A DNA stretch of 64,000 nt from Octopus sinensis (lineage: Eukaryota): positions 62,001 to 126,000 of the forward strand of contig NW_021833064.1 in NCBI RefSeq assembly GCF_006345805.1, given 5' to 3'. Position numbers and translations under genes: made by a program. Below, piece after piece: positions 503 to 63,503 of the stretch; position 1 is the first letter of the stretch, and each line of letters opens with the position of its first letter. A model generated the notes under the pieces. It was not told the origin of the DNA and did not search any database. It saw only the letters and a program-made list of their open reading frames with translations.

Positions 503-573
503 TGCGCCAGCCGGGAGTCGAACCCGGGTCGCCTGCTTGGAAGGCAGGTATAATACCGTTATACAACTGGCGC
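503..573 (-). tRNA. tRNA-Gly (TCC)
   Basis: Reverse complement GCGCCAGTTGTATAACGGTATTATACCTGCCTTCCAAGCAGGCGACCCGGGTTCGACTCCCGGCTGGCGCA folds as a cloverleaf with TCC anticodon and GTTCGA T-loop, followed by a T-run (Pol III terminator). Confidence 0.95.
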
Positions 574-3385: not shown

Positions 3386-4384
3386 TATATACGACTGAGT
3401 AAAATGTACCTATTCTCGTTTGGAAACGACTGAGTAAAATGTACCTACCTTCGTTTTTGGCTAACACAATTCAGCTTAAGACGATATGGCTTACGTAGGC
3501 GATTCATAGATACCTATAAATACAAAAAATGATACTTATTAAAGGGATTCTACAAATTTTTATTCCAGAAATGGTCAATTTTTAAATTCATAGTTATGAG
3601 CAAGTCCTCTTAAATATTCTATCGGACTTATATTGTCAATTTTGAATACCAGTTCAGCATTATTGTCAGCTTGCTAAGGATTTCGAAACTTAAAATGTTT
3701 GTGTATTCACCAATCCTTTCAATAGAAACAAATGATAAAGCAATTATCATTTTACCTCATAGTGCAAAATTCGGGTCATTTATGTATCTATTCCTTAACC
3801 CCAAAGATTTAATATGTCTGTTTATATGAAGATACAATATGCCGAAACGTTTCTACGCCGAATCGTCCAACACTGAATAGTCTTTCTCAAAATTTTCTAC
3901 GCTGAATCGTCTTACTCCGAATAGTTCTGCACTCAAGATCAAAATGAAGTATCTGTTCTTTCCAGCTCTGGGACGTTCTTACATGAGGCAAGATATAATG
4001 CTTTTTTTGCCTCGGTGTGCGCTGCGAAGTTTGCTTCCTCCATACCACGCGTCCTCTCAGTATTGCAGTACTTCCGGTTTGGGCGAATTTTTTTTGGGAA
4101 TTTTAATATCCTGCTTACAGTGTTATGGTGCGATTATCATGTCTCTAAAAAAGCATTTGATTTTCTTGTCTGGTGTTAGGCTGTATTGTTTGAACGATGA
4201 TAAATGAGCACTTCAAAGTTCAAACACTGATTTGCTGCAATTGTATTTTTCGAACATCTTGTATAACCAATTTATTCCTTAATTTTGCTGACAACATTAG
4301 AAGCTATCGTTAAGCTTTGTTGACTTGGATTTAGTCTGTCTTTTTGTTTACCAAGTTGGTATTTGTCAAAATTAATGTTGATTA

Positions 4385-4880
4385 ATTAAACCGGCGGGAA
4401 GTCGACACGATCGAGAAAGAGTTAGAGCGTACTATCGCGAGGGATATCCGCTCGAAAAACCATCTCGATTTGCGGTCGTCGCCTGTGAGAGCGGACATGC
4501 GGGACCCGATCTCCTGAACGAAGCTGATTGCCTTTCCGCCCAGGGAACCGGGAGTCTAAACCGCGAATGGAAGGAATTGGAACTTCTCAGTAAGTGAGGA
4601 GTACTTCCGCATCTTTATGCATTCCGCGGTTGTGGCGATAGATCCAAGGGCGGATGCAGACATCAGCAGGTTCTGAGGTGAGAAAGAGTCCACACACGTG
4701 GCATCCCAGGTAAGAGGCTTCCCCCTGTTGAAGGGAAACACAGTGATCCCATCAGGCTTTTTCCCATCCCCCGATCGATCCCAGTGGGTTCAACTAAAAG
4801 GGGGATTCTGTCTTTTGAACTATGGTAACTAAAAATGGAATATAGTAACATGGAAGCTATGCAAACGAGCTCCATATTTA
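4385..4880 (-). mobile_element. CRE-like non-LTR retrotransposon 3' fragment
   Basis: LLVEPTGIDRG..GK.PDG...PFNRGKPLTWDATCVDSF...KMRKYSSL...FLPFAV motifs. Confidence 0.75.
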
Positions 4881-5310: not shown

Positions 5311-5607
5311 AGTCAATCACAAGATTTTGTTAATTCTGGAATGTATACGTTTTATTTAGACTATTTAAAACTGGTTATCAAATTCCTTTCTATTCTGCGT
5401 TAAAAATTGCTCCCTACTTATAAGGAAAACAAAGGCCGGTATACCACCGTCTTATAAGGGTGTCTCATTTTAAATTCCTCAGTTTAATTTTATTAATTTG
5501 TTCTTATAATTAGTAAAAAATGTTTTTAATTATTTTTAAAAGTGTTTCTTTCTGGTTGTTTATTTGGATATCAAAGTTGTGCAATTAACTGCATCGATAG
5601 CAAATCC

Positions 5608-6201
5608 ATGTTAAAAAAATTATTAATTGCCGAGAAAAAAATGAAGGCGTCATCTCACTTATCAATCTTATTGTCAGAATTTTCGATGGTTTATATTTTT
5701 GATAGATAGTAGGTTTTTTTTGTCGAAACTGCTGCGGATTATTTTTATGAAGTTCCATTCCCTCTTACTGTTTGTTTTATAATCTGCACGATTTTGTTAG
5801 TATCCATCCATTTACTAGCACTTGTTATGAGCATTTTTTTAATTCCTTACATCAACGACTCTGTGCGCTCGCTTATTATAAAACAGCCTATCAAATACGC
5901 ACAGGCAAAGGATCTTTTTCCAAGTGTAAATATTTCCTGGATAATGTCGACTCAACTTGGACTTTTATTATTTTCAGTGGACATGTCTCTAATTTGTTTT
6001 ATTCGTTTTTATAGAAATGGATTGGTTTGGGGTTCTATTGGTTTTATTGTGGTAATTTCTACGGTTATTTGGATGTTTGTTATTGCTCGAAGAATAAACA
6101 TCAAGTTTAAAAAAATTAGAAATTTACAAAATTATCGCACCAAAAATTCTACAATTGAATGTAGTTCAGAGACACTTAATGAATTACTTTTAACCGAGTA
6201 A
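5608..6201 (+). CDS. ORAI: Orai (CRAC) calcium channel subunit, divergent; start may lie further upstream
   Basis: With a 24-nt intron (5689-5712): KMKASSHLSILLSEFSM|VFFVE (TM1), LLVSIHLLALVMSIFLIP (TM2), ISWIMSTQLGLLLFSVDMSLICFIRF (TM3), plus a fourth hydrophobic helix; these align with Orai TM1-TM4. Confidence 0.85.
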
Positions 6202-6717: not shown

Positions 6718-9700
6718 TGTCACAGTCCAGGGCTGCGAGACGCCAAGGCTGCGAGGTTTTGAAAATATTAATAATTTAAAAAAAAATACATTTCTGAAGT
6801 TCTTTTGTTGATCTCTTCAATAAATATCTAAAATTATTAATTTTTTCTTAATTATTTCAGAGATTGTGATTTCATGAAAACCAACATATCACCAAAATCA
6901 TTGATTTAACGTAGCGTTTTTTGATTCTATTAAAAAATTCACGGAAAATGGTTAACCAAACTAATTTTTGCGACGAAATCTATTAAAAATATTAATTAAA
7001 ATTTATAATATTAAACTTATAAGACTAAACTAACCGACAGCCCTACGGGCAGATCTTTCAGCTTGCTACTAGACCCTATGCGGCCTTCGGCCGCGGTATT
7101 TTTGATACCCTAACTTTCTAGAGAGGTATTTTTCCAAAACATTCTCTTAGACCCAAAAAAATAAAAATCAAAAAATTAAGGAAATTTAAGTTATTACAAC
7201 TTTTTTACGCGGCTTATATGAACGGTGTTTTCTATTTCTTCATCATCAAGAATGGTGATCATCTCTCCGTCAGTGTTTGTTACTTATATTTTTTTGTTGA
7301 AATTTGGTCGTACAGCGGATATTTTCTATTACCCACCCTGGTTTGCGTCCATCGTGACGTATTAAAATCTCATCACCATGTTCAATTTCGTCGTGCTTCC
7401 ATCTTCTTCTTTCTTCTTCGCTTTTTCATTTTTTCGCCAGATTTAACAATATTTGCGAGGGCAATTTTTCGTTTTTCTTCTTCACCCTCCAAATTTTTTC
7501 GAGGCGAAGTAGAATGGATTTCCGCGTCTTCATTGTGACCATCGAAACCTAATAGTGCTTCCAATTTCTTTTTTTCGTATTTTTTGGAAAGATCCACATT
7601 GAAAAATATTTCGAAGGGTCTCTGCTTTGTTGTATCGTGAGTAGAATTGTTGTAATCACGAACAACATCTTTTAGGAAATGGATGTAGCATCCAAAATTT
7701 CCTCTCGGCCCACTAGAGGATGAGATCCATCGTTTTATTGACTGATTAAATCTATCTGGATTAAGCAACAAAAAATACCGTTCGACTTGTCCCTGTATCC
7801 ATGGAGCTCGTGGCCGTCCAGAAACATGAGAAATGTTATATTTTTCGCAAAGTTGTTCCATATGAGAATTTTTGAATTCCTTTCCGTTATCGGTATGAAA
7901 AATAATCGGAGGTCCAATTATGCAAAAAATTCCATTCAGGATTCGGGAAATCTCAATTGCAGATTTGCTAATGGCACTTTCTACTACACCGAATTTAGAA
8001 AAAGAATCAATTAAAACAAGTATCTGTTAATTATATTCAAAAATAATAAACCCAGGAATAATTTTCATTTTGTGCAGAATATCGCCTTAAATCAACAAGA
8101 TCTACGATGTACCGGTCTCTCGGTGCATAAGCAATGATAGGCGTAATTATAGGTTTGGTAGCAAGCATTCGTTAGACCAGGCCTGGCCAACCCAAATCGC
8201 ATCGCGGGCCACTTTGTCCAAATGAATCCTTTCCGCGGGCCGCATATACATGTACATACTAAGGATAGATATCAAAACAACACAGATAAGATTTTATTTA
8301 GTAAAATAGCATTCAGTCCAATATACGTATCAATGAGAAATCTGTTTTTTTTTTATCTTCACTTAATTTTTTCAAATCAACTTCACAATTACTAGTTGCA
8401 CATCTTAATTGGTTTTCTAAGTTTTTATCTGTTAAAGAAGATCTATATCTACTTTTACTAAACTTTAATTTCGAAAAGAATGATTCACATACGTAAGTAG
8501 ATCCAAAGGAGCTTACAACTCTTTGTGCAAAAATTCTTAAGTTGGGATATTTTTCTGCAGTCACATATTTGTTATAAAAGTCAATTTTGGATATAGTAGG
8601 ATAAACAAGTCTTAGTTCACTGTTGCACTGTAGGTCAATTATTTCCGTCTGCAAAGTATTTGAAACAATAGAAACGTCAACATGAAATGGAGAAGAAAAT
8701 GTTTCAAACATTTTCTCATATTTTTTTAGTTCCGAGAATCGACTGTCAAATGCTGCACCAAGATTTTTTATTTCATCAGCGTACTTGAAGAAATTTTTAC
8801 AATGGCTGATTTTAAATTGATTTAGCGTTGGAAAATGTTGATCATTTCCATTTCTTATTTGACATTCAAACAATGACAATTTCATTCGAAATGCTTTGAC
8901 TTGATGGCATGCATTAGTAATCAAATTATCCTGTCCTTGTAACTCCTTGTTTAATTGATTAATTTTTTCGGTTATATCTACCAAAAAGCACAGATCTAGC
9001 ATCCATTCTTCATCATTTAATTCAGTTAATGTCATTTTCTTATGCATCATAAAACTTTTGATTTCTTCTCTCAAGTCGAAAAAACGTTTTAAACATTTTC
9101 CGCGACTCAGCCATCTGACATTGGAAAAATACACAAGATCACCATAGTGAGAATATAACTCGTTCAATAATTCTTTAAACTGGCGATGTTGAAGTGCATG
9201 AGAACGAATGAAGTTTATAGTTCTTACAACCACACTCATAACATGGTTCATAGACAACACTTGCGCGCACAAATTGTGTTGATGTATCAAGCAGTGTATT
9301 ACAAATAAATCATTTTTTATGCTTCTTGACTCCATCTCATCCATTATTAGCTTTACAACTCCTTTATTTCTTCCAATCATAGCCGGCGCCCCATCTGTTG
9401 TCAATCCAGCAAGGGTCTCTAAATTCGCTCCATTGTCGGATAAACATTTCATAACAGCTTGGAAAATATCTTCGCCCTTTGTAGTATCTTTCAAACTGAC
9501 AAGGTTAAGCATTTCTTGTTTCACTTGAAAAGATTCGGTAACTCCACGAATATATACTACAAGTTGAGACGTGTCTGATATATCCGTGCATTCGTCAAAG
9601 GCCAAAAAATAACTTTTGAAATATTTTATTTGATCACGCAAAGTCACCACAATTTCATTTGAAATGTCATTAACCCTGCGACATATGGTTTGACGTGACA

Positions 9701-10835
9701 AGCTAATGTTTGAAAACTTTTTAGTTTTATCTGGCAAAATGTCTTCACACGACAGCATCCAAACACTCTTTTACGAATTCTCCATCCGAAAATGATTTCA
9801 TTCTCTTTGAAATTATCATTGCAACAGAGTAGCTTGCTTTAACAGTATCAGAAGAAGAGTGTATCGATGAATTTAATAGTCTTTGCTGATTTCTCAATCA
9901 GATTTAAGCGAATCCAGTTTCCTTGTTTTCAATTCCTTACTAAATTTCGCGTATTCGGAATGCTTTGTTTCATAATGTCTTCTTACATTGTACTCTTTCA
10001 CCACCGATACTTTCTCCTTGCAAATTAAACATGTTGGCTTGGAATTATGCATTATAAAAAAGTAATCTTCTTCCCATGATTGCTGAATTGCCTGTTTTCT
10101 TCAAAAATTTTCCTTTTCTTCATATTGATAACAGCTACAAAAATAGATAAACTTTAAAATTTATTAAACTTATAAAATTTATCTTTATTTATTAAACTTA
10201 AGAAAAATTTATCTTGAATGTATTTATAGGTTAACTACATACAAAATTTCTCTCGCGGGCCGCACCAAACTCCATCGCGGGCCGCAAACTTGTTAAACTA
10301 AATAAATAACCTGACAATAAACGCATTTAGATACCACAGTGGCAACTTCACTACGTCTTGCACCATAAATCGACGGTGACAATAAACTATATAATTTATC
10401 TCGTCCAAAGTGGTTTAAATTGTGTTGAGCCTAATTTAAATCAGGAAATATCAAACTTCAATGTATTTGAGCTTTAATTCAGCTTCCTCGATACAAAAGA
10501 ATCGCAACTCTCGACCATTTTTAGCAATGTAGGCTGCGGAATTCTTGAAAGTGAAACTTTCGGCATATCGCTTGATTTTTGCCCTTTCCCTCCAGTCGAT
10601 GCATTCATCTAGTAGTCCGGATTCACTGAAATTCTTAATTTTTTGAATTGTTTCAAGAGTTAATTCCACTAGAACCATTTTTATAATTAATATTTAAATT
10701 AAAATTATATAATAAGTTTTATTTTTTATTATTAATAATTTTTTCCAATGAAAAGTTTTCTAAAAAAAATATTTTTTTTGCATTTTAAGCATTGACCTCG
10801 CAGCCCTGGACGGCTCGCAGCCCTGGACTGTGACA
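6718..10835 (-). mobile_element. Ginger-like DNA transposon with intron-containing retroviral-type integrase, interrupted by a hAT element
   Basis: Perfect 22-bp TIRs TGTCACAGTCCAGGGCTGCGAG (6718-6739, 10814-10835); 5-bp TSD AACAA on both sides; HHCC zinc finger and D,D35E core; introns at 10431-10456, 8024-8050 and about 7752-7778. Confidence 0.85.
8178..10290 (-). mobile_element. hAT transposon (GTF2IRD2/SPIN/Charlie-like) nested in the Ginger-like element
   Basis: TIR-like CAGGCCTGGCCAAC at 8178; GCGGGCCGC subterminal motifs at both ends; transposase from ATG 10123 (CLIC...RRHYETKH BED-type finger) continuing into ORF 8313-9758 (FDECTD, TTDGAPAM, CLIHQ, VRWLSRG, FGSTYVCESFFS). Confidence 0.9.
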
Positions 10836-16192: not shown

Positions 16193-17972
16193 CTAATATA
16201 TTTTTGACCTATTTCGATGCATATTCAATGATTCCTTTATTTCAGATATCATGGGATTATTTCCTTGACCGCATTTATTTCCAGTAACATCGTCAAAATC
16301 TAAGGTCCACGCAAACATTCCTGCTAGTCCGTTATCGTTTACATATTTTGCCTGCAAAATAAAAAAAGAATTTACTTTTTCTTTAATACTTCTAGTGCTT
16401 TCGTATCCTAACCAATAGTAGTCTTTTACTCCGTGCGATACCTTTTGCTTATTATCCCACACTTCAGTATAACCTAGTTTACAATACTAATTTTTTTATA
16501 GAATAGAAAGTACTTCAATATATGCTAGAATTCCTGATTGTTGTGTTATCGACCCTGCAGGAGTTCCGCCAACAATTCTATCCCCAATTTTTGGATTTTT
16601 TGTGGCAGTTTTGAATCCTTGTCCGTAGATGGGTGACCCAATAATCATTTTTGACTTTGGCGCACCATTTTCGGCCCAATATCTGACAACATAATCCTGT
16701 AAATTTTTGTTTATTTAATCTGATTACAATGTTTAATGTGTCAGTATCACTTATTCCATATAATCCAGAGTGATGGCCCACAGTAGTTGAAAACTGCCCG
16801 TAGAAATCGTAAGTCATCAAATTGATGTAATCAAGGTATCTAATTGTAAGATTGCAAATGCTTAACTTGGATATTTCTTTTATCTCATAGGAAGCCTGAA
16901 TCTTGGAAACTCCTGCTGAGACAGCTGCTGTCAACATATATGTTTTCGGGCCTTTTCGAAACTCTGTGCTCATTGCTTTTAACAGTCGGTTGTACGCTTG
17001 TTTTTGATTTTGAGGATATTCCCAGTCAATGTCAAATCCGTCAAAATTGTGTTTTTTTAAAAAATTTTTGGTGTTTCTTGCGAATATCTCGGCATTGGAT
17101 TCACTGCTTGATACAATTGAAAATTCATTTAACAGTCTTTGGTACCCTCCAACAGAAAGCAAGACTTTTAAATTTGGATTCAAACTTTTAAGAGAAGTGA
17201 TACGATGATAATCGTTATATTTACCTACTATATTTTTAACAAATATACCCTCAGGCAAATCAGACCAAGGGTCATTAGAAATAGGAGTGAGATTGTTTGC
17301 ATCAATGTTGCAAAATGCGTATATTATATGAGTACAAAGGTTTGCAATATCTTTGTCATTAAATTCGAACCCTCCTGTCCTGTATTTTGCCCAGTTTGTA
17401 TAATAGCAAAATAATAATTTATTTTCGTTAGTTTCACTGTTAATAGTTATTACTAAAATAAATCAAGCGATAAATCAAATTTTACCAATTAAATTCTGCG
17501 ATTCCGCATCAGAATTCTTATAATTAATTTGATCTACATCTTCGGATGGAAAATCACTATTTTGTGTTTTTCGCCTGGATGATGTTTCGATTTTATCTAA
17601 TTATTTTAATCGCTTAACTACTGGTAGAAGAAACAGTTGGAGCATTAACTTGTTCATTCTGAAATTTAAATTCATTAAAATAAAATACATTTTTTTCTGG
17701 ACAGTTTACTAAGGAAGGCCAATTACAGACATCTGCTTCACTGTCGTATAGTAATCCACTTGGGCAACTCTTAGTGATCGGCTTTATTCCAATTTGAGTA
17801 CACACTAAGTATTTTTTACATCCATCAATAGGAATATTTCCAATTGATGTGCATGTTTGATCTTTATATGATATTAAATTATACCATTTTGAATGGATTC
17901 TTTTGATAAAATTATCTATTTTTGATAAATTAATAAAAAATTACTAACCGTGAATATTAAATAAATTATCAT
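16193..17972 (-). CDS. Secreted GH18 chitinase with N-terminal CBM14 chitin-binding domain, multi-exon
   Basis: MIIYLIFT|IILSKESIQN| leader; six-Cys CBM14 (...SCPSGLLYDSEADVCNWP..VNC); CYYTNWAKYR; catalytic FDGFDIDWEYP; NLMTYD; AGMFAWTLDFDD; short GT-AG introns. Confidence 0.92.
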
Positions 17973-26118: not shown

Positions 26119-26610
26119 ATGCACTCTGATATGAACGACATCATACGGAGGGTCCTCGACTCGGCAGGATTTCCTTCGGTTCTCGAACCACCGGGTCTTG
26201 ACCGCGGTGACGGGAAACGTCTTGACGGGATGATTCTTTCCCCTTTTGAGGGCAGAAAAGGCCTCGTATGGGATGCAACCTACTGGGATACTTTTTCTGC
26301 TTCACATTTAACTTCGTGTGTTCTGGAGGCTAAATCTGCTGCTAAGAAGGCTGAAGATTTAAAGCTATCAAAATATTCTGCCCTTTCGGAGGAGTTTTTC
26401 GTGGTGCCGATAGCGGCGGGACGTCGGGTGCTCTCGGTCCAAAGACTGAAAAGTTCCTCCGCAAGCTCGAAGCCAAAATCTCAATGCGCACTCACGATCC
26501 TCGGGAGGTGGACTGGCTATTGCAACGGTTCTCGATCGCCGTTATCCGGGGAAACATTTGGCAATTCGCCAGGCCTGCTGACCTTCCCTTCGATTAATCG
26601 ATATTATTGA
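26119..26610 (+). mobile_element. CRE-like non-LTR 3' fragment (RLE domain)
   Basis: IIRRVLDSAGFPSVLEPPGLDRGDGKRLDGMILSPFEGRKGLVWDAT.WDTF...KAEDLKLSKYSAL. Confidence 0.8.
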
Positions 26611-35690: not shown

Positions 35691-37234
35691 ATGTTGTCTT
35701 GTGACTCGAGTTATCTCGCTCTGATATTGGCAGCAATCAGTGTGTTATTTTACTATATAACCAAACGTCATTCTGACGGAAAAGTAGTTATAATTTGATT
35801 ATTTATAGTTAAATTATCCACCAATGGTCAAAAGGGGTCTTCCATTCTTTGGAGTCGCCTTTGAGTTTGGAAAAGACCCCGTCAAGTTCCTCCTGTCTTG
35901 CTACGAGGAGGTATGTGGTCAGAATATTCCAAGTATGGGCCTGTCGTGACCTTCACAATGATGGGCAAGCAGTTCACCTACTTGCTGGGCAGTGAAGCAG
36001 CAGAACTGTTCTTCAACAGCAAAAATGATGTCCTCAACGCGGAGGAAGCCTATTCCAAGTTGACGACACCCGTTTTCGGTCCCCGAGTAGTCTACGACAT
36101 CCCCAACCACGTATTCTGATCTCCTAAATAATAGATATTCCTCCAACAAAAAAAAATTGGAAAAAGTGGACTCAATTCTGACCGATTCCGCACATTTGTC
36201 CCCAAAATCGAGGATGAGACTGCCCAATTCTTCGCCAAATGGACAAAGACAGGCGTGGCTGACTTGTTCAAGGAATTGTCCTCTCTGATCATATTCACTG
36301 CCTCCCGTTGTCTGCTGGGGGATGAATTGAGGGAAGTCATGGACGAGTCGGTCGCTGGACTTCTCTCTGATTTGGATCAGGGGTTTAGGCCGGAGGTGTG
36401 GTTACTCCCCCAGTGGTTCCCTCTCCCTGTCAAAAAGTATGGAATATTGACGATTGTAGAGTCCGGGACCGTGCCCACCAGAAGATAAAATCTTTATTTT
36501 CTCAACAAGTTAGAAAAAGACGGGAAAGTGGTATAAGGCGAGAAGATTTGATGCAAACTTTTATTGATACTCCTTACACGGATGGGCGGAAGATGGACGA
36601 TGGCGAAGTGGTGGGATTGCTGATTGGAATGTTGTTGGGAGGGCAGCACACGTCCTCCACGACTTCTTCATGGCTGGGTCTGTACATCGCGAGGGATGAG
36701 GCACTGCAGGAGGCATTGTATGAGGAACAGATGAGTGTGCGGGGAGGGGACCCAATCACGTACGACCATTTGGAGGAAATGGATTTATTGGACAGATGTT
36801 TGAGGGAAACACTGCGACTGAGGGCTCCCCTTATTACTACTATGCGGGTGTGCAAGGTTCCTGTTCAGGTGTTGGGATATGACATCCCCGTGGACACTCA
36901 CGTGTGTATTAGTGCCAGTGTCAACCACCGCCTTAAGAATGTGTGGCACAATGTAGACAACTTTGACCCAGATCGGTTGTTTGTTGGTTTTTATGATAGT
37001 TTCCTTGAGTACGATGTGAGTAAGATTGGACGCTATTCGTATATTCCATTTGGACAGGGCAGACACCGCTGCATTGGCGAGTCCTTTGCCTACGTCCAGA
37101 TCAAGACCATTTGGGCACATCTCATTCAGAAATTTCGTTTCAGCCTTCCGGGGGGTCGTTTTCCTGATGTTGACTTGACTACGATGATTCAAGCCCCCAA
37201 ACATCCAATCATCAACTACACCCTGAGAAACTAG
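35691..37234 (+). CDS. CYP51: Sterol 14-alpha demethylase (cytochrome P450 family 51), multi-exon
   Basis: N-terminal anchor; [20 protein letters not shown]; I-helix [11 protein letters not shown]; ETLR; heme motif [10 protein letters not shown]; introns of 23-25 nt restore the frame. Confidence 0.95.
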
Positions 37235-39451: not shown

Positions 39452-41131
39452 CAGTCCGACCTCTAATTGGGGCGCACCTCCAGGGGTGGGGCACCTCTTT
39501 TTTGGGGAAAACTCTGTTTTGGGGCATTATAAATTTTTTTAACCAAATTATAAAAAATCAATTAATTTTAACATCTCTATTTGGGGCATTGATTTTTTAT
39601 TAAATAAAATTAATTATACCAATTTAAAAAATAAATATTTTAAGACACGTTTCATTTCAAATTTCTTGTGTAATGCCTTTGAATTATGAAACCAAGTTGA
39701 AGATTGCTGATCATCTTTTAAAAAAAGAACATTCTGAGAGGAGATTATCCATAATGTACAATACTAGCAAGGGAACTATTTTTCGTATAAAAAAGAATAT
39801 TCTTCCATTTATCAAAAAAGGATTTCTTTCCTCATCATTAAGTGAAAATAAAAACGGATTTGATGAAAAAGTCCTTGATATTTTTCAGCGTCTAAGGGAT
39901 CAGAATGTTCCAGTTTCTGGAACTCTTTTAAAAAAAATTTCCCTAACTGTTTCTTCGAGAATGGGTTTAAACAAGTTTAAAGCTCCAAATGGATGGTTAG
40001 AAAAATTCAAGCAGAGGCATGAATTAAAATTCCGAACATTGTCAGGCGAATCCGCATCTGCTGATCATGCGATAATTTTGAATTTTTTATCAGAATTAAA
40101 TATCAAAGTTGAACAATATGAAAAGGAGAACATTTTTAATTGTGACGAAACTTCTCTTTTTATCAAACTTACCCCACGTAAATCATTCGTGAAAACTGGT
40201 GATTCGGCACGGGGCTTTAAAAGGAGTAAAGATAAAGTTACTCTTCATCTATGCTGTAGTTACACTGGAAAAAAATTTGAACCATTAATAATCGGAAAAT
40301 ATAGAAATCCTAGATGTTTCAAAAAATTTTCTCCCGAAATTTATGGAATTTTATACTCTTCGTCCAAAAATGCGTGGATGACAAGAGACATTTTTATATC
40401 CTGGCTCAAAAAAATTAATGAAAAAATGATTATTCAAAAAAGAAAAATCTTAATGTTATTAGATAACGCTGCTTGCCACAAAATATCGACATTTAGCAAC
40501 GTTGATTTTTTATTTTTACCAAAAAATACGACACCAATACTTCAACCATTGGATGCTGGAATCATTAAAAATTTCAAGGATAATTATTTGAATTGTCTAA
40601 TTGATTTTTTATGTTTTCAAGACGACCAGGATTTGTTTATAGAGTCTTTATTTAAATTAAATTTGCGGCAAGTGGTAACAATAATCTCAGATGCTTGGAA
40701 TAATGTATCTGCGGATATTATTTATAACTGCTGGCAAAAGGTTTTTCGACAACCTCCATCAGACTCGAGTTGCATAAATGAATCATCTGAAGAAATATTT
40801 AATAATGTTATTGATGAATGTTTTGACGAAATAGAAGATAATGATCCAAATATCTATGAGAATATAAGCTGCGAACCATCAATATCACAAATTTTAAGTT
40901 TGATGGAGACAAACATCTTTGATTTGATTCCAGATTCTCTTCATGATTTTTATAAATTCAGAAAGAAAGTGTTGTTAGGAATTAAAAATAAATATAAATA
41001 TGGAGAAAAATTAACTGATTATTTTAAAAAATAATGTTCTTTTTCTTTATTTATTGAGCTTTTTGAAAAACCTCTTTTTTGGGGAAACCTCTGATTTGAG
41101 GCACTTAGTGCCCCATTTAGAGGTCGGACTG
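39452..41131 (+). mobile_element. Pogo/Tigger DNA transposon with intact 453-aa transposase (39673-41034)
   Basis: TIRs CAGTCCGACCTCTAA...GGGGC, TA on both sides; CENP-B-type HTH (GWLEKFKQRH), FNCDETSLF, LLDNAACH, QPLDAGII (D-29-D). Confidence 0.95.
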
Positions 41132-41427: not shown

Positions 41428-42253
41428 ATGTTTTCTTTTCATAATCCTAAAAATATCACTATATCTATCCGAGTCCCCAATTGCCAGTATACGGCAGAAA
41501 TAGTCGGAAAACAAGGTGCTGCGTGAATATTAACCGACAGGGTCAAAAATCAAAGCCATTTGCGAAGACACAACACATTCATTCAGAATCCCACCAGAGG
41601 AGAAGAACCAATCTTCTGCGTGACTGGGGCCTGAGGATGTCGAAAAGGCCATCAACGAAATCAAATGTGCTGCTCAACATTTTTCAAAAATCCGGTCGAC
41701 ACAACTCGTGGGAGATGAACAGGTGGTGGCGTACGTGAAGGTACCTGACCACTTGGTGGGACTGATTGTGGGGTATGGGGGAATGACGATCACACGAATA
41801 CAGCGCGAGACGGGCACATACATTGTCTCGCCCACTCGAGGGAAGGAGCCCGTTTTCAAAATCATTGGGAAGACCAGTGATGTGACCTGTGCCTATGATA
41901 AAATCAAAGCACACGTTCAGACGAGAACAGGGGTGAATGAGGGAGACATCAGAAGATGTATGTTCCTAACGATTGAGGAAATGGAGACTATTCATAGCAA
42001 GTCCATTGAGTCGGGTGACGAGGAACAGTGCAAGGATATCACCCTTAAAAACACGACTCCTCCTAGTAGGGGCTCGACTTCGCCCAGTGATCAATCTTGG
42101 GATATCACCTATGAATCATGTTTGCATAGACCATTTTACGGAATTCTATTTTGTGGGTATTATGACCCGTCGCTTTATATGTTCTCCTACTTGCAGTACT
42201 TGGAGACAATGTGCTATATCCACTTTTTCAATTCGCAACTTTGTTATGAATAA
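41428..42253 (+). CDS. MEX3: MEX3-like tandem KH-domain RNA-binding protein
   Basis: AEIVGKQ|GSKIKA (25-nt intron 41516-41540), NPTRGEEPIF.VTG, AAQHFSKIR, VPDHLVGLIVG.GG.TI.RIQRETGTYIVSPTRGKEPVF; two single-base shifts in homopolymers in KH1. Confidence 0.88.
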
Positions 42254-43562: not shown

Positions 43563-45360
43563 CAGTAGACTATCCATTTAACGAAAAAAAATTTAACGAA
43601 AATATTCATTTTACGAAAGTCAAAATATTTTTTTACGTTTTTCCTTAGATAAATTCAAAAATAAATTTTTTTTTCTTTGTATTAGTGAATATTTAAATAT
43701 ATTTAACGAATATTTAAATAACGAAAATTAAAATTTTTGATAAAATTTTAAAATATTTTTCCTCGCTATTTCTTTGTAGTAAACCATGTTGCAAGGGTGA
43801 ACAATATGAAAAAAAAAAGAAAACTTATCAATTTCAACAAAAACTGGAAGTTATTGATTTCAAGAAGATAATCCTGCTGTTACTCAAGAAAATTTGGCTC
43901 AGCGGTTTAATATACCTATTGGAGTGATCAATTCAACGTTGAACGTTGAAGAAAATGCATTGTATGGATCAAGGCGTCACAAACAAAAAAAGAATATTAC
44001 ATTTAAAAGTTGTACTGATAAGATATATGAACCACTATATGCATGGATTCAGATCAAACGTTTCTGTAATCACACCATAACTAATGAAATGGTACGCGAA
44101 ATGGCACTCAAAATTGCTCAACGATTTTATAATGAAAATTTCAAAGCATCTCACCCAGATTTCACGCTTTAAGGAAGAGTATAAAATAAAAACACTCACG
44201 ATTTCTGGAGAAGAACAATTAGTGGATCCCGTTTTGCTTTAGATTCATATGAACGCTTTGCAGCCATGTTAAAAAATATGGATCGAAAAATGTTTACAAC
44301 TGGGATGAAACTGCCTTTTTTTCAAATGTACTCCAAAAAAAACATTAGTTCTTGACTCCGAATCAAGGGCTTCAGGAAAATTTTCTAAAGAACGAATAAC
44401 ACTGTTATTATGCACAAATATGGAAGGAGATAAAGAGCATCCGTTGGTAATCGGAAAATTCAAAAATCCTCATGTTTTAAAAATATTAAATGAATAATCT
44501 TGGGATTCAATATGCAAATAGTAATAAATCTTGGATGACCAGTTTAATTTTTAAAAACTGGGTTGAACGGTTAAATTCCAAAATGAGTGTGGAAAATAGA
44601 AAGATTTTGCTTTTTTAGATAATGCGCCATGTCACTATTTTGATGGCGAATTCAGTAATATCGAATTGTATTTTCTTCCTCTAAAGACAACATCTAAGAT
44701 TCAACCAATTGATCAAGGGATTGTGCATTCATTTAAATCGTTGTATAAAAAAGGAATGACTAGAAATTTGAGTATGGGAACAAATATAGGAACATTGTCA
44801 TATACAGATGAACTTACCAAATTCAAATTAGTGAATGCTCTACCTTTAATTATTGAAACTTGGAACGAAGTCACAGTGGACACTATCAAAAATTGCTTTA
44901 ACAAGGCATTAAATAATTGGGCGAAGATAGATGAAAAAATACTTGAAGAATCCACTGACGAAAAAGGTATTAATTTAAATCACCTTACAATTAAAGATAA
45001 TAAAAGTGAAATTATGATTGAGTTTCCTGTCTGTGCACCTGTCGTCTGCGAAGAAAACGCGTATCTTGATACAATACAATGTGAGGAAGAAAATGAGCAT
45101 GAAGAAATAGATAGCACAAATGACAATCCATTGGTTATGCGATGCACTTAAATATTTGGAAAATATTGAAAAATATTTTTTGCAAGAATCTGGTGAACAT
45201 ATTCACCTAATTACAAATTTGAGAAATATATTGGCAAAAATTAAAAAGAAGGAACCTAAAATTACCGATTACATGACACATTTTTAATTAAACAATTTTT
45301 TTCGTTAAATTCATTTAACGAATGCTCAATTTTCATTTTCGTTAAATGAATAGTCTACTG
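43563..45360 (+). mobile_element. Tigger/Pogo transposon, copy A
   Basis: TIR CAGTAGACTATCCATTTAACGAA / TTCGTTAAATGAATAGTCTACTG; TA TSD; frameshifted transposase. Confidence 0.92.
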
Positions 45361-46206: not shown

Positions 46207-48008
46207 CAGTAGACTATCCATTTAACGAAAAAAAATTTAACGAAAATATTCATTTTACGAAAGTCAAAATATTTTTTTACGTTTTTCCTTAGATAAATTC
46301 AAAAATAAAATTTTTTTTCTTTGTATTAGTGAATATTTAAATATATTTAACGAATATTTAAATAACGAAAATTAAAATTTTTGATAAAATTTTAAAATAA
46401 TTTTTCCTCGCTATTTCTTGTAGTAAACCATGTTTGCAAGGGTGAACAATATGAAAAAAAAAGAAAACTTATCAATTCAACAAAAACTGGAAGTTATTGA
46501 TTTCAAGAAGAATAATCCTGCTGTTACTCAAGAAAATTTGGCTCAGCGGTTTAATATACCTATTGGAGTGATCAATTCAACGTTGAAGAAAATGCAATTG
46601 TATGGATCAAGGCGTCACAAACAAAAAAAGAATATTACATTTAAAAGTTGTACTGATAAGATATATGAACCACTATATGCATGGATTCAGATCAAACGTT
46701 TCTGTAATCACACCATAACTAATGAAATGGTACGCGAAATGGCACTCAAAATTGCTCAACGATTTTATAATGAAAATTTCAAAGCATCTCACCCATGGAT
46801 TTCACGCTTTAAGGAAGAGTATAAAATAAAAACACTCACGATTTCTGGAGAAGAACAATTAGTGGATCCCGTTTTGCTTATAGATTCATATGAACGCTTT
46901 GCAGCCATGTTAAAAAATATGGATCGAAAAATGTTTACAACTGGGATGAAACTGCCTTTTTTTCAAATGTACTCCAAAAAAAACATTAGTTCTTGACTCC
47001 GAATCAAGGGCTTCAGGAAAATTTTCTAAAGAACGAATAACACTGTTATTATGCACAAATATGGAAGGAGATAAAGAGCATCCGTTGGTAATCGGAAAAT
47101 TCAAAAATCCTCATGGTTTTAAAAATATTAATATGAATAATCTTGGGATTCAATATGCAAATAGTAATAAATCTTGGATGACCAGTTTAATTTTTAAAAA
47201 CTGGGTTGAACGGTTAAATTCCAAAATGAGTGTGGAAAATAGAAAGATTTTGCTTCTTTTAGATAATGCGCCAGTTCACTATTTTGATGGCGAATTCAGT
47301 AATATCGAATTGTATTTTCTTCCTCTAAAGACAACATCTAAGATTCAACCAATTGATCAAGGGATTGTGCATTCATTTAATCGTTGTATAAAAAAGGAAT
47401 GACTAGAAATTTGAGTATGGGAACAAATATAGGAACATTGTCATATACAGATGAACTTACCAAATTCAAATTAGTGAATGCTCTACCTTTAATTATTGAA
47501 ACTTGGAACGAAGTCACAGTGGACACTATCAAAAATTGCTTTAACACAAGGCATTAAATAATTGGGCGAAGATAGATGAAAAAATACTTGAAGAATCCAC
47601 TGACGAAAAAGGTATTAAATTTAAATCACCTTACAATTAAAGATAATAAAAGTGAAATTATGATTGAGTTTCCTGTCTGTGCACCTGTCGTCTGCGAAGA
47701 AAACGCGTATCTTGATACAATACAATGTGAGGAAGAAAATGAGCATGAAGAAATAGATAGCACAAATGACAATCCCATTGGTTATGCAGATGCACTTAAA
47801 TATTTGGAAAATATTGAAAAATATTTTTTGCAAGAATCTGGTGAACATATTCACCTAATTACAAATTTGAGAAATATATTGGCAAAAATTAAAAAGAAGG
47901 AACCTAAAATTACCGATTACATGACACATTTTTAATTAAACAATTTTTTTCGTTAAATTCATTTAACGAATGCTCAATTTTCATTTTCGTTAAATGAATA
48001 GTCTACTG
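46207..48008 (+). mobile_element. Tigger/Pogo transposon, copy B (near-identical to A)
   Basis: Same TIRs with TA TSD; LLLDNAPVH, QPIDQGIV motifs; differs from A mostly by indels. Confidence 0.92.
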
Positions 48009-53264: not shown

Positions 53265-54410
53265 GTGTGCAAAAAATTTTTTGGGGGGGGGGAAATTTTA
53301 CAATTAAAAAACCAATGGTTAAAAAAATAGGTCTAGTCAATTGGATATTCTCTTCTGTTTTTATTTTGTATCCAAAATTTGTATATTCGATCAAGATCCA
53401 CTGTATTCAAAGATTTCAGATAGATCTTATAGATCTGAAAAGTTTTTCTACTATAAATAAAAATTTTAAATGGATTTTAACGGTCATTGACGTATATAGC
53501 AGGTTGGTTTTTTAACAATTTTTATAGATTTGCATTTGCGAGGCCGCTCTACACTAAGTCCTCAAATGAAGTTTGTGAAAACCTCAGATCATTATTTTTC
53601 TTAAATGGTCCGTGTCAATTTCTTAAGTCCGATAATGGGACTGAATTCAAGAATCGTGAAATGACCAATCTATGTGAGGAATTCAATATCAAACGAATTC
53701 ACGGAAGGCCAAACAATCCCCGCTCACAAGGGATTGTCGAACGCTTCAACCAGTCAATTACAAGAAAAATGGCAAAAATGATCGACAATGATAATAAAAA
53801 GTGGCTGGAAAAATTAGAAAATGCAGTGTACAGTTATAACATTTCTGTCCACTCATCTTCTAATGAGAGCCCTTTTGAAAGATACCGGAGAATAAGTGGA
53901 ATAAATACAATATTTTATGGTTGTAATTATAAAATTATTCCTTAGATAATTCAAGTAATGATTTGTTGAGTCCTGATCAAGTCGATGATGCAAACAATTG
54001 TCCGAGTCCAATTGAAAATTCATGTAATTTGAATTTCTATATGTAGATGATTGCAATTATTCGTTTACAAGTCCGAAAAGATTTCAGTTCGAAATCAACC
54101 CCATTGATCCTAATTCTAATTATTACAAAGCGATGAACAGAAAAATGAATGTTCACAATAGTAAGTATGAATTTAGTGTTGGTGATAAAGTATGCATAAA
54201 AATTAATGTTTAGGTTTGAGTTAAAAAAGACTTTGGAACAAATCCTTCGTTGCGACTGGATAAGTTTGAATCTCCATATTATCCATCTGCAGAAATTATC
54301 AGTATTTTATCAAACAATCGCGTTGAGGTAGTTTAAACATTTAAATTTAATAGATAAAAAATTCGATGAGCGAAATTTCGATTGTGCCAATGTCCAGACT
54401 TAAAAAATAA
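53265..54410 (+). mobile_element. Second Ginger-type integrase family, truncated, with a 25-nt intron
   Basis: QRFQIDLIDL...WILTVIDVYSR|FAFA (intron 53503-53527), SDNGTEF, QGIVERFNQSI, YSYN..VHS; no TIRs resolved. Confidence 0.75.
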
Positions 54411-59209: not shown

Positions 59210-61123
59210 CAGTTTACCCTCTATTGCTCGCCAATTCTATTGCTCGCCATTTCTATAACTCGCCACTTTTTTAGAAAAAATGCCATTTTTACTAAGGAAA
59301 TTTCATTGCTCGCCAAATTCTCTTACTCGCCACGTTTTAGTATTAAAAAATTAAAATTTATTATTAAAAAAATAATTTTTTCAAATATTTATACCGCGTG
59401 TTTTTTTTGTAACATGAGGAAGTGCTCAAGATTATCTTATGATCAAAAAAGAGAAATTATAAATTATCTTATTGATAATTCTTCTCTAAGTCTAAGGCGT
59501 GTTTCAGAATTTTTTCGTCGCGTTTCAAAAAATCAATTTCGAGACGTGCAATTAACGATCTTAAATTGAACAAACAGAAGATTCTTGGAATTAATCCAAT
59601 TTATGGGAGAAGTTCTCGTTTTTCGAAACTTAGATATTCAGCAATTGATTCTGAAATCATTGCCTGGATAGATTACATGGAATCTATTGGAGTTTGCCCT
59701 CAATGATGAATATTTTGTCGAAAGCAACTGAAATTGCTGCGTTAAACGGTCTCTTCTTCGAATTTAAAGCCAGTAAAGGATGGCTTGAAAAGTTCAAAAA
59801 AAGGCACAATGTAAAACTAAGAATTTTTCATGGTGAATTGGGATCGCGGAGACTTCAAAGACCAAATCGAAGACTTTAAAAAAATTATCTCTTCTAAAAT
59901 AAATGAATATGGTTCAGAAAATGTTTATAATGCCGACGAAACCGGCGTATTTTACAAGACCATTCCATCAAAAAGTGTCTGCAGGAAACGCCGACCAGAC
60001 AAAAATTACTTAAAGATAGGTTTAACATTTTTAGCCAATTTTCAGATTTTCATTAATGCTTTGCGCAAATATGACTGGATCCGATAAAAGAACCCCTTTG
60101 ATGATCGGGCAGTTTAAGAAACCAAGGTGTTTTAAAACTTGAACGTTGATGAATATCTACAATACCGGAATTCTTCAAAGGCTTGGATGAACATGGAAAT
60201 ATTTAACGAATGGTTGTATAATTGGAACAAGACTCTCAAACAAAAACAAAAAAAGATACTTTTGGTTGTAGACCATTGTCCTTCGCATAGAACAACAATC
60301 GAATTAAGTATGATAGAAGTTTTATATTTACCAAAAAACACGACTACTGTGCTTCAACCGATGGATCACGGAATCATTAGATCATTCAAATCTCATTTCA
60401 ACAAATTTAAATTTAAACATATAATTGAACAAATAAACTACGGTGACGCAACTATTGAATGCTATAAAAAATTAACCCTGAAAGATGCAGTCTTATTTTC
60501 TTATCTAGCCTGGAAAGATGTGTCAGTGGATACAATATCAAAATGTTTTCAGCACGCCAAATGGGAAAACAGAATGAAGAACCTATTATGGGAGACCATA
60601 AAATAAAAATTTCGAACAAATTATAGAAAATTAATGATCACAGATCCCATAAAAAGGAGTTTATAGACTTTACGTACTCTGAAAATGACGAACTTCATGA
60701 ATTTGTTCAAAACAATAACTATGAAAATAACGATGAAAATGCAATTTTTAGACAGTTCAATTACTGAAGATTGGAAAGAAACAACTGTATTACACATCGA
60801 GATGCGATAAAATGTATTTCGGACCTCAAAATATTTTTCACATGACGATAATTTTGATGTGAATATGCTAGAAAGTTTATTAAAAATGCAAAAAAATTAG
60901 AGAAAAGATCATACAAAAAAACTATAAATGATTACTTTACTTAAAATTTTGGTTTTTTAAATAAATGTTTCGGCTATTTATTTAAATGTTTAGATAGTTA
61001 AAAATTATAGAAATTTTTTGTTGATAGAAAATAGGATATTAATTATTTCTCTTACTCGCCAAATTCTCTTAGTCGCCAATTTTGGCTTGGTCCCAAAAAT
61101 GGCGAGCAATAGAGGGAAGACTG
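59210..61123 (+). mobile_element. Tigger/Pogo transposon, frameshifted
   Basis: TIRs CAGT(T)TACCCTCTATTGCTCGCCA / TGGCGAGCAATAGAGGGAAGACTG; TA flanks; YNADETG, VDHCPSH, QPMDHGII. Confidence 0.9.
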
Positions 61124-62937: not shown

Positions 62938-63402
62938 TTATATCAATTTTCGTCTTTTAGGGACAGAATCGTTTACAGGATCTTTGACTGCAAATATTTC
63001 TAAATACTCAGGCGGCAGATGGCCTTCCTCCAATCTAAACGACTCCAAGTCGTTTTCTGAGAGAGGGTTGATAGATTTGGCCACTTCTGGCCTCTGGTTT
63101 AGAATTTGTCTCAGTGAACTGCCTTCTGGCTGCCAGGTGAGGTCCATATGTCCCAAAAGTCGAGGCAAGTAAGCTGTGAGGCTTTGATCTATTCGTTTAT
63201 TTGAGTATTTGTCGAATATTGTGTCCAATTCATAGTATTTTAGGAGGTTGTTGTAGCCTGAGATCAGATCGGGTTCTGACTTGTTTTTATGTTTTTTATT
63301 ACCTGGAAGTTTTCTAAGTAAATAGAAAGGTCCATTAGAAATGACAGAAGGCTTTTCGACGAGGGAAATCACTGTCTTTAGTGATGATTTCGAGTTTTCC
63401 AT
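62938..63402 (-). CDS. MED19: Mediator subunit 19, intronless
   Basis: GPFYLLR.LP, NLLKYYEL, YLP.LLG..D, SSLR, FRL..G.LP are Med19 conserved blocks. Confidence 0.85.
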   Translation of the reverse strand: MENSKSSLKTVISLVEKPSVISNGPFYLLRKLPGNKKHKNKSEPDLISGYNNLLKYYELDTIFDKYSNKRIDQSLTAYLPRLLGHMDLTWQPEGSSLRQILNQRPEVAKSINPLSENDLESFRLEEGHLPPEYLEIFAVKDPVNDSVPKRRKLI

Positions 63403-63503
63403 GCCCACAAGATAATATTGAAATTTTGAATTTTATTTATCACAAATTAAAAATATAACATAAAATATAATTTAAAATAAAAAAAAACAATCGATGTGGG
63501 ACT

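Follow-up and report, generated by a model that had tools for sequence, protein, structure and literature searches.

Can an Orai Ca2+ channel be kept shut when the residues that close its human counterpart have been replaced, and if it cannot, how would such a channel be gated? The question is raised by a gene at positions 5608-6201 (plus strand) of a 64-kb stretch of DNA, hereafter the window, which corresponds to about 62,001-126,000 of VCDQ01010919.1 in the Octopus sinensis assembly GCA_006345805.1; on that contig the gene lies at ~67,608-68,201. In the CRAC (Ca2+ release-activated Ca2+) channel, Gly98 (the hinge) and Pro245 (the kink) are regarded as parts of the gate mechanics, and mutations of G98 and P245 give rise to tubular aggregate myopathy or Stormorken-like disease in humans. 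The gene described here is real and intact, is composed of two exons and encodes an Orai protein that has diverged very far and in which neither residue is present. A first-pass annotation of this DNA had recognized an Orai channel with substitutions at sites equivalent to human gain-of-function positions, and had proposed a naturally leaky or differently gated channel; it overlooked a 24-nt intron and the probable dicyemid origin of the sequence.

A two-exon gene with a 24-nt intron

The gene is organized as follows.

5608-6201, plus strand: Orai gene, from the ATG at 5608-5610 to the TAA at 6199-6201; the spliced product has 189 aa by translation
5608..5688, plus strand: exon 1, M1-M27 by translation, comprising a minimal cytosolic N-terminus that resembles the extended transmembrane Orai N-terminal (ETON) region and most of transmembrane helix 1 (TM1)
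5689..5712, plus strand: intron of 24 nt, GT..AG, phase 0, GTTTATATTTTTGATAGATAGTAG, with in-frame TAG TAG
5713..6201, plus strand: exon 2, V28-E189 and the TAA, comprising the last part of TM1, in which the selectivity Glu lies, then TM2, TM3, TM4, a basic helical extension and an acidic LNEL tail

Read without splicing, the frame extends for 33 codons and then meets TAG TAG at 5707-5712. When the segment 5689-5712 is spliced out, the product reads MLKKLLIAEKKMKASSHLSILLSEFSM|VFFVETAAD... over 189 aa, and its ...EFSM|VFFVE becomes a gapless match to the family motif ...GFAM|VAMVE. The GT..AG boundaries of the intron are intact and its length is divisible by three. Its site is the M101|V102 junction, in phase 0, the same as in the Orai genes of a lamprey and an oribatid mite, the two annotated loci that were fetched. 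In the lamprey locus exon 1 ends with atg|gtgagt and exon 2 starts with cag|gtg, while the mite junction reads tta|gtaagt, likewise in phase 0. The same region is marked in the databases by a dozen mis-predicted Orai proteins, which depart from the family right before VAMVE, and by 14 Orai fragments that start at the M104 equivalent, a few residues into exon 2. The gapless alignment, the conserved phase-0 site and the tiny introns found in neighbouring genes together render the 24-nt intron credible. A retrocopy or a transposon-captured gene was rejected because the ancestral intron has been retained; meaningful flanking direct or inverted repeats are also absent. The possibility that the 24-nt segment is a diverged tandem duplicate of the following 24 nt (MVYIFD versus VFFVE) was considered as well, and the 12/24 identities counted by eye in this AT-rich sequence were judged to be due to chance.

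Exon 2 holds 163 codons without a stop in DNA of 34% GC (chance ~4e-6), and the 189 codons of the spliced gene include no stops and no frameshifts. The start was placed at 5608, and the N-terminus is putative. Exon 1 begins where ORAI1 has residue 75, the Pfam and PDB alignments of the product begin at residue 3-4, and an open frame upstream of 5608 is absent in all frames. An upstream exon joined through a 25-nt GT..AG candidate at 5576-5600, which would add MFLIIFKSVSFWLFIWISN, was rejected, as it has no homology support and its hydrophobic N-terminal segment clashes with Orai topology. Similarly, an alternative 3' intron at 6161-6198 (38 nt) would exchange the LNEL tail for an AT-rich nonsense open reading frame (ORF) and has no support. 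Exact look-up of two versions of the exon-2 ORF, and of a hAT transposase ORF from the same window, returned no record.

Family membership and predicted fold

The spliced product matched Pfam PF07856 (Orai-1) with E=4.4e-24 and a score of 85.5 bits (the cutoff being 25) over profile positions 8-161 of 173. The match to Drosophila Orai (4HKR) gave E=9.9e-21, and the sequences of other fly Orai structures gave E ~1e-20. A HMMER search of 1.84 billion cluster representatives detected 259 family representatives at E<1e-3, all of them Orai-like and none above 42% identity, while a word-indexed search of protein sequences gave no match. An AlphaFold2 (AF2) model built on a 32-sequence alignment had a mean predicted local distance difference test score (pLDDT) of 86.2, with helices at residues 2-36, 43-83, 87-125 and 132-173 and a short one at 180-187. 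When this model was compared with the PDB by Foldseek, the significant matches were Orai entries only, among them 7KR5 with a TM-score (TMt) of 0.82 and a root mean square deviation (rmsd) of 2.2 A. Pfam, the fly structures and the modelled fold thus agree on the Orai identity that the first-pass annotation had assigned.

Of the characters by which the family is recognized, the profile, the four-helix fold, E106, the hydrophobic gate, the H134/W176/G183 interface and the phase-0 intron are all found in this protein. The TM1 Gly (G98), the triple basic ring (R91, K87, R83) and the TM4 proline (P245) are not. In total, 21 of the 29 family columns with at least 90% conservation are retained, and the radical misses among these near-invariant columns are G98E, A103F, T142I, P164Q and P245.

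Drosophila Orai (PDB 4HKR, 6BBF, 6AKI, 7KR5) and human ORAI1-3 share with the window protein their Pfam family, the four-helix fold and the TM1 pore register, and the short TM3-TM4 loop is like that of fly Orai. In contrast, the identity of the core to the fly and human proteins is 30-36%, whereas sponge-to-human Orai pairs reach 47-70%. The window protein further differs from them by G98E, R83E, R91H, E190D, A103F, T142I and P164Q, by a proline-free TM4 that is ~7 residues shorter, by the lack of a long N-terminus, by a basic extension of TM4 and by the loss of the acidic residues of loop 2. The highest percentages of identity, 40-42% over the matched stretch, were obtained with nematode Orai proteins (for example Bursaphelenchus xylophilus A0A1I7ST83 and Parastrongyloides A0A0N4ZIS7). 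Unlike the window protein, these are canonical at G98, R83, R91 and P245 and have long N-termini.

Superposition of the AF2 model gave rmsd values of 5.2-6.3 A to the unlatched structures 6BBG/6BBH/6BBI/6BBF and of 8.7 A to 4HKR. The straight TM4 of the model was considered as a sign of an unlatched, open-like state and was discarded as such, since a control AF2 model of a canonical mite Orai, which has both G98 and P245, also shows TM4 as one continuous helix.

Residues of the pore and the transmembrane helices

Residue equivalences were obtained by aligning the window protein with 150 cluster representatives and with human ORAI1, whose numbering was checked at 19 landmark residues. TM1 aligns to human ORAI1 without gaps, which bears out the earlier reading of this helix up to |VFFVE. 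The residues kept in TM1 and the preceding segment are K85 (K11), K87 (K13), L95 (L21), F99 (F25), V102 (V28) and E106 (E32); those kept elsewhere include H134 (H60), L138, W176 (W103), G183 (G110) and F187. The equivalents of E106, V102 and H134 had already been listed as conserved in the first-pass annotation, and the four substitutions that it named (G98 to E, R83 to E, R91 to H and E190 to D) are likewise confirmed, at E24, E9, H17 and D117, respectively. The sites concerned are as follows.

5725..5727, plus strand: Glu32, equivalent of the selectivity-filter Glu E106 of ORAI1, codon GAA; Glu in 145/149 representatives
5677..5679, plus strand: Glu24, equivalent of the "gating hinge" G98 of ORAI1, codon GAA; Gly in 119/119 genuine TM1 sequences and Glu in none
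5632..5658, plus strand: altered basic region of the inner pore, with Glu9 (R83; GAG at 5632-5634), Lys13 (K87) and His17 (R91; CAC at 5656-5658)
5980..5982, plus strand: Asp117, equivalent of E190 of ORAI1 in TM3, codon GAC; Asp in 6/147 representatives
6025..6093, plus strand: TM4 without proline, V132-I151; next comes VIARR, where canonical Orai has its LVSHK nexus; TM4 is shorter than the canonical helix by ~7 residues

All of the non-Gly cases at position 98 among the representatives proved to be mis-predicted first exons. The R83 column is occupied by R in 98 sequences and by K in 19 (R/K in 117/129), and never by E. Glu at either the G98 or the R83 position occurs in none of the 150 representatives, and this family-wide contrast makes the two substitutions more striking than the first-pass annotation had presented them. 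The R91 column, on the other hand, varies (R in 69, T in 18, K in 16 and H in 4). A103, next to the gate, is replaced by F29 at a position where 93% of the representatives have Ala, and in the HMMER alignment the loop-2 residues E149, E166 and E173 have become N, K and N.

The TM4 sequence GLVWGSIGFIVVISTVIWMFVIARR has no Pro in residues 130-156. The P245 position is occupied by V141 according to HMMER and one MAFFT run, and by S143 according to another MAFFT run; the earlier placement of a Val at the kink therefore stands in the former alignments and not in the latter. A Pro at the TM4 kink, which the first-pass annotation had named as an observation that would speak against its reading, was looked for, and TM4 is proline-free in every alignment. 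Among the representatives, Pro is found in 128/139 at this column, and some of the exceptions are truncated or mis-predicted.

The weight placed on Glu24 raises the question of its codon. It is highly improbable that GAA stands for GGA through an error of sequencing or assembly or through recoding at the RNA level. One transition would be enough, there is a single assembly, and the contig probably entered it as a contaminant of low coverage. The divergence, however, spans the whole gene, the remaining odd residues do not depend on codon 24, and the frame persists across several homopolymers (A7 and T9), the kind of site at which the errors of long reads accumulate.

Proposed gating of the divergent channel

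The effects of mutations at several of these positions have been described for ORAI1. G98D and G98P produce constitutive, non-selective channels, G98S is a gain-of-function mutation found in disease, G98A blocks activation and G98R abolishes expression, while every substitution of P245 leads to STIM1-independent Ca2+ entry (PMC12893689). According to the same source, the inner gate is made up of the basic stretch R91/K87/R83, hydrophilic residues at R91 keep function, E190Q lowers selectivity and E190A leaves Ca2+ influx unaffected, the loop-2 residues E149, E166 and E173 pair with the N-terminus, and deletion of residues 1-78 results in loss of function (PMC12893689). The premise of the first-pass annotation, that G98D/S and P245L open ORAI1 independently of STIM, is thus confirmed in the literature. 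G98E itself was not mentioned in the searchable literature.

Like the engineered and disease-linked gain-of-function mutants G98D, G98P, G98S and P245L/P245X (P288L in the fly, PDB 6AKI), the window protein has a residue other than Gly at 98 and other than Pro at 245, and the side chain at 98 is acidic, as in ORAI1 G98D; here the two changes come together in a single natural protein. The ORAI1 mutants G98D/S and P245L are the nearest functional analogues, whereas the nearest natural ones are the P245-less Orai proteins of lamprey and sponge, which keep G98. By analogy with the mutants, the window protein may be a divergent dicyemid Orai that is gated unlike the STIM-operated CRAC channel, our preferred reading, to which we assign about an even chance. 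Such a channel, perhaps constitutive in part or independent of STIM, would probably be less selective for Ca2+.

The mechanism envisaged is the following. The product would be a four-helix pore subunit that assembles around TM1 like other Orai proteins, with E32 retained as the outer ring of Glu, V28, F25 and L21 retained as hydrophobic residues, and the remaining pore and closing devices rebuilt. A second acidic ring (E24) would take the place of the Gly hinge amid the hydrophobic gate, and one of the three basic rings would be left, that of K13 between H17 and E9. The predicted pore profile would then be acidic E32, V28, acidic E24, L21, His, Lys and acidic E9, in place of an acidic ring, a hydrophobic section and three basic rings. 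A charged polar side chain at 98 would favour the orientation of TM1 in which the hydrophobic stretch becomes hydrated, the disappearance of most positive charge would take away much of the electrostatic barrier to cations, and a shorter, unkinked TM4 would drop another stabiliser of the closed state. The replacement of R91 by His is probably harmless, judging from the hydrophilic residues tolerated at this site and from the natural occurrence of His, Thr and Lys there. Taken as a whole, the canonical closed state would not be stabilised as in ORAI1, and closure would need lineage-specific, co-evolved features. Compensation of this kind is to be expected, because a free Ca2+ leak is costly.

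An apparently selected natural Orai in which G98, P245 and two of the three basic rings have been replaced would amount to a ready-made gating experiment. It could reveal both the features needed for a shut, Ca2+-selective pore and the second-site changes able to compensate for their loss.

A number of observations weigh against altered gating. About two thirds of the core positions differ from those of other animal Orai proteins (core identity of 30-36%). The mutants carry one change each in a human or fly channel that is otherwise wild type and whose currents are known, whereas the window protein differs at most positions and is known here from its sequence. At such low identity the effects of single-site mutants may not transfer, epistasis being likely. 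Of the earlier interpretation, the Orai identity and the listed substitutions hold, while the step from human mutants to a leaky channel is by analogy only. Neither the word-indexed nor the exhaustive HMMER search found an orthologue, the nearest relatives being at most 42% identical. The AF2 model cannot discriminate between open and closed states or between the rival readings. Constitutive opening of a Ca2+ channel usually does harm, a point in favour of some compensating gate. The TM4 proline is dispensed with in genuine natural exceptions, among them the lamprey "CRAC channel protein 1-like" (XP_061417020.1), which has Leu, and Oscarella pearsei, which has Val. Both carry an aliphatic residue at P245, as the window protein possibly does (V141). 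Unlike it, they have retained Gly98 and R83, their TM1 is canonical, and their identity to the cores of other Orai proteins amounts to 47-57%. The nexus-like VIARR stretch, the I162/L165 pair and the LNEL tail, all retained, leave room for STIM coupling. Finally, the intron donor, GTTTAT, is a weaker one than GTATG, which the introns of a neighbouring CYP51 gene have, and the GC content at third codon positions (GC3) of the Orai coding sequence is 0.29, equal to that of the AT-rich background and the transposons, whereas CYP51 and two other neighbouring genes (encoding a KH-domain protein and Med19) have values of 0.41-0.54.

Several of these observations would suit a functional and essentially conventional store-operated Orai, in which the odd residues (E24, H17, E9 and the missing TM4 proline) are neutralised by co-evolved changes and by a co-diverged STIM. 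We consider this possible, although rather unlikely. Candidate compensators can be named: F29/F30 beside the gate, the shortened TM4 and the rebuilt loop 2. The equivalents of H134, L138, W176, G183 and F187, which set the closed state of ORAI1, are all present, the elements VIARR, I162/L165 and LNEL are kept, P245 has been replaced naturally in lamprey and sponge, and the cost of a Ca2+ leak points in the same direction. The lineage also appears to evolve fast, as the CYP51 encoded in the window is 50-55% identical to its mollusc, annelid, brachiopod, vertebrate, sponge and placozoan counterparts, which are 60-75% identical among themselves, and high mesozoan rates have been noted. Nevertheless, the invariance of G98 in all 119 genuine TM1 sequences implies that a charged residue there is not ordinary neutral drift. 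In addition, the C-terminal helix is basic, whereas in canonical channels it is acidic and faces a basic STIM, and the acidic loop-2 residues that would pair with the N-terminus have been lost.

The low GC3 and the weak 5' splice site are also what would be expected of a non-functional or decaying copy, an unexpressed or unspliced relic whose oddities reflect relaxed constraint. To these may be added the overall GC content, which likewise matches the AT-rich background and the transposons, the transposon fragments that surround the gene, and an unspliced frame that ends after 33 codons. The N-terminus, moreover, begins at the residue 75 equivalent and leaves little margin with respect to the deletion of residues 1-78 that abolishes function, and the ORF has no entry in the protein collection, in which another ORF from nearby on this contig is represented. 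A relic is nonetheless improbable. The frame has remained intact over 189 codons despite ~65% divergence from all relatives, and the 21 near-invariant positions kept out of 29 include the pore Glu, H134, W176 and G183. All four helices are modelled with confidence, and the ancestral intron is kept with its GT..AG intact. Low GC3 was rejected as proof of a pseudogene, since an equally AT-rich GH18 gene in the window preserves its catalytic DxxDxDxE motif.

The extreme divergence would also fit a lineage-specific paralogue, a modulatory or dominant subunit that forms no channel alone and co-assembles with a canonical Orai encoded elsewhere. Mammalian Orai subunits are known to heteromerise, and a preprint discusses native mixtures of isoforms (bioRxiv 10.64898/2026.07.10.737753). 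A second Orai copy was not detected in the 64-kb window by tblastn, and the reduced dicyemid genomes, with ~5,000 genes, make the retention of a paralogue less likely; we regard a modulatory subunit as quite improbable.

The C-terminus and possible coupling to STIM

Two segments compete for equivalence with the STIM-binding motif at the C-terminus of ORAI1.

6115..6126, plus strand: I162-R-N-L165, equivalent of ORAI1 L273/L276 by MAFFT, within the basic helix (continuous helix 132-173 of the AF2 model)
6175..6186, plus strand: L182-N-E-L185, the same string as ORAI1 L273-N-E-L276, in a short helix of low model confidence

The canonical spacing from P245 (+28/+31) falls on R169 and N172, that is, on neither of the two. 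The I162/L165 pair (KKIRNLQN, to be compared with GIRELEL of the fly) lies one heptad, or 7 residues, nearer to TM4 than usual, and L182/L185 of TLNELL lie 13 residues farther from it. The resemblance of TLNELL to the STIM-binding motif, which the first-pass annotation had cited in favour of persisting STIM coupling, is real as a string, LNEL being identical to ORAI1, but its homology is ambiguous in view of the competing I162/L165 placement; the argument for STIM coupling drawn from this sequence is thus ambiguous as well. The helix at 152-171 contains eight basic residues and no acidic ones, whereas the acidic C-terminal helix of canonical Orai opposes basic residues of STIM.

Dicyemids consist of ~30 cells and have ~5,000 genes. 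It is conceivable, albeit unlikely, that they have lost STIM and turned a single Orai into a STIM-independent cation channel, of which the double acidic ring (E32 and E24), the nearly vanished basic gate and the unkinked TM4 would be the marks. If this is true, the gene would be nature's own version of the human disease mutations G98S and P245L, and it would show in what way an Orai pore can be controlled, or be usefully leaky, when the canonical closing devices are missing. The searchable dicyemid papers and their supplements contained no mention of Orai or STIM. Orai is older than STIM and may have operated without it (PMC11506743). The gene bears on a possible return of Orai to a STIM-independent mode, as has been proposed for pre-metazoan Orai.

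Origin of the contig

The window has a GC content of 34%, introns of 23-31 nt and a heavy transposon load. To our knowledge, octopus genes do not contain 23-nt introns. Among animals, introns shorter than 30 nt have been reported solely in dicyemids and myxobolid myxozoans (PMC13644364), and the median intron of Dicyema sp. measures 27 bp (PMC6543705). The genome of Dicyema japonicum, obtained from the kidneys of O. sinensis, has 36.7% GC and 49% repeats (PMC6736024). On the basis of the ultra-short introns, the composition, the repeat load, the divergence of the encoded proteins and the octopus host of the assembly, the contig very probably represents DNA of a dicyemid kidney parasite that was co-assembled with that of its host.

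Two other sources were considered and set aside. A myxozoan origin is disfavoured by the octopus host and by the absence of cnidarians among the CYP51 matches listed by name. Renal ciliates also have tiny introns, and they read TAA/TAG as Gln; the 451 codons of CYP51 and the GH18 gene, however, are free of in-frame TAA/TAG, the intron site is common to animal Orai genes, and transposons are abundant. The probable occurrence of parasite contigs inside a widely used octopus reference assembly matters for the mining of "cephalopod" genes.

Neighbouring genes and elements

The remaining features of the window are given below, beginning with the genes that carry tiny introns.

about 35,700-37,234, plus strand: gene for CYP51 (sterol 14-demethylase) that looks complete; over 451 aa it is colinear with the Lingula protein, with 53% identity; its ORF product is on record for VCDQ01010919.1, a contig of 147.5 kb
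35911-35933 (23 nt), 36111-36134 (24 nt) and 36437-36459 (23 nt), plus strand: CYP51 introns, whose removal is needed for colinearity with Lingula
35784-35808, plus strand: candidate fourth CYP51 intron of 25 nt, just upstream of the other three
about 16,400-17,900, minus strand: GH18 chitinase-like gene with intact catalytic motif DGFDIDWEYP; GC3 of 0.34
16697-16727 (31 nt) and 16487-16513 (~27 nt, boundary uncertain), minus strand: candidate GH18 introns, after removal of which the motifs read through
3890-4093, plus strand: U2 spliceosomal small nuclear RNA (snRNA), Rfam RF00004, 66.5 bits, 1.5 kb upstream of the Orai gene
503-573, minus strand: tRNA gene
41708-42253, plus strand: exon of a KH-domain protein; GC3 of 0.54
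62938-63408, minus strand: exon of the Mediator subunit Med19; GC3 of 0.41
2157-2639, 4556-4875, 7382-7861 and 8313-9758, minus strand: transposon ORFs, some of them long and intact
26119-26610, 39673-41034, 44666-45151, 46430-46996, 53487-53945 and 60139-60606, plus strand: transposon ORFs

The CYP51 region has a GC content of 0.45-0.49, far above that of the remainder of the window, and it is noteworthy in itself that a reduced parasite would possess a P450 of sterol synthesis. Upstream of the GH18 gene, a Cys-rich stretch resembles a chitin-binding domain by eye. As the U2 snRNA stems from an organism that splices 23-nt introns, its comparison with canonical U2 may be worthwhile. The higher GC3 of the KH-domain and Med19 exons relative to the Orai and GH18 genes indicates that codon composition is strongly heterogeneous within the contig.

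Among the transposon ORFs are those for a hAT transposase of 481 aa and for a pogo/Tc5 DDE_1 transposase of 453 aa, as well as integrase (rve) fragments. Tc1/mariner-like pieces and further DDE_1-like pieces were recognized by eye only, and two related ORF fragments, also noted by eye, share a ...WDAT...D.FS... motif and are possibly derived from a retroelement.

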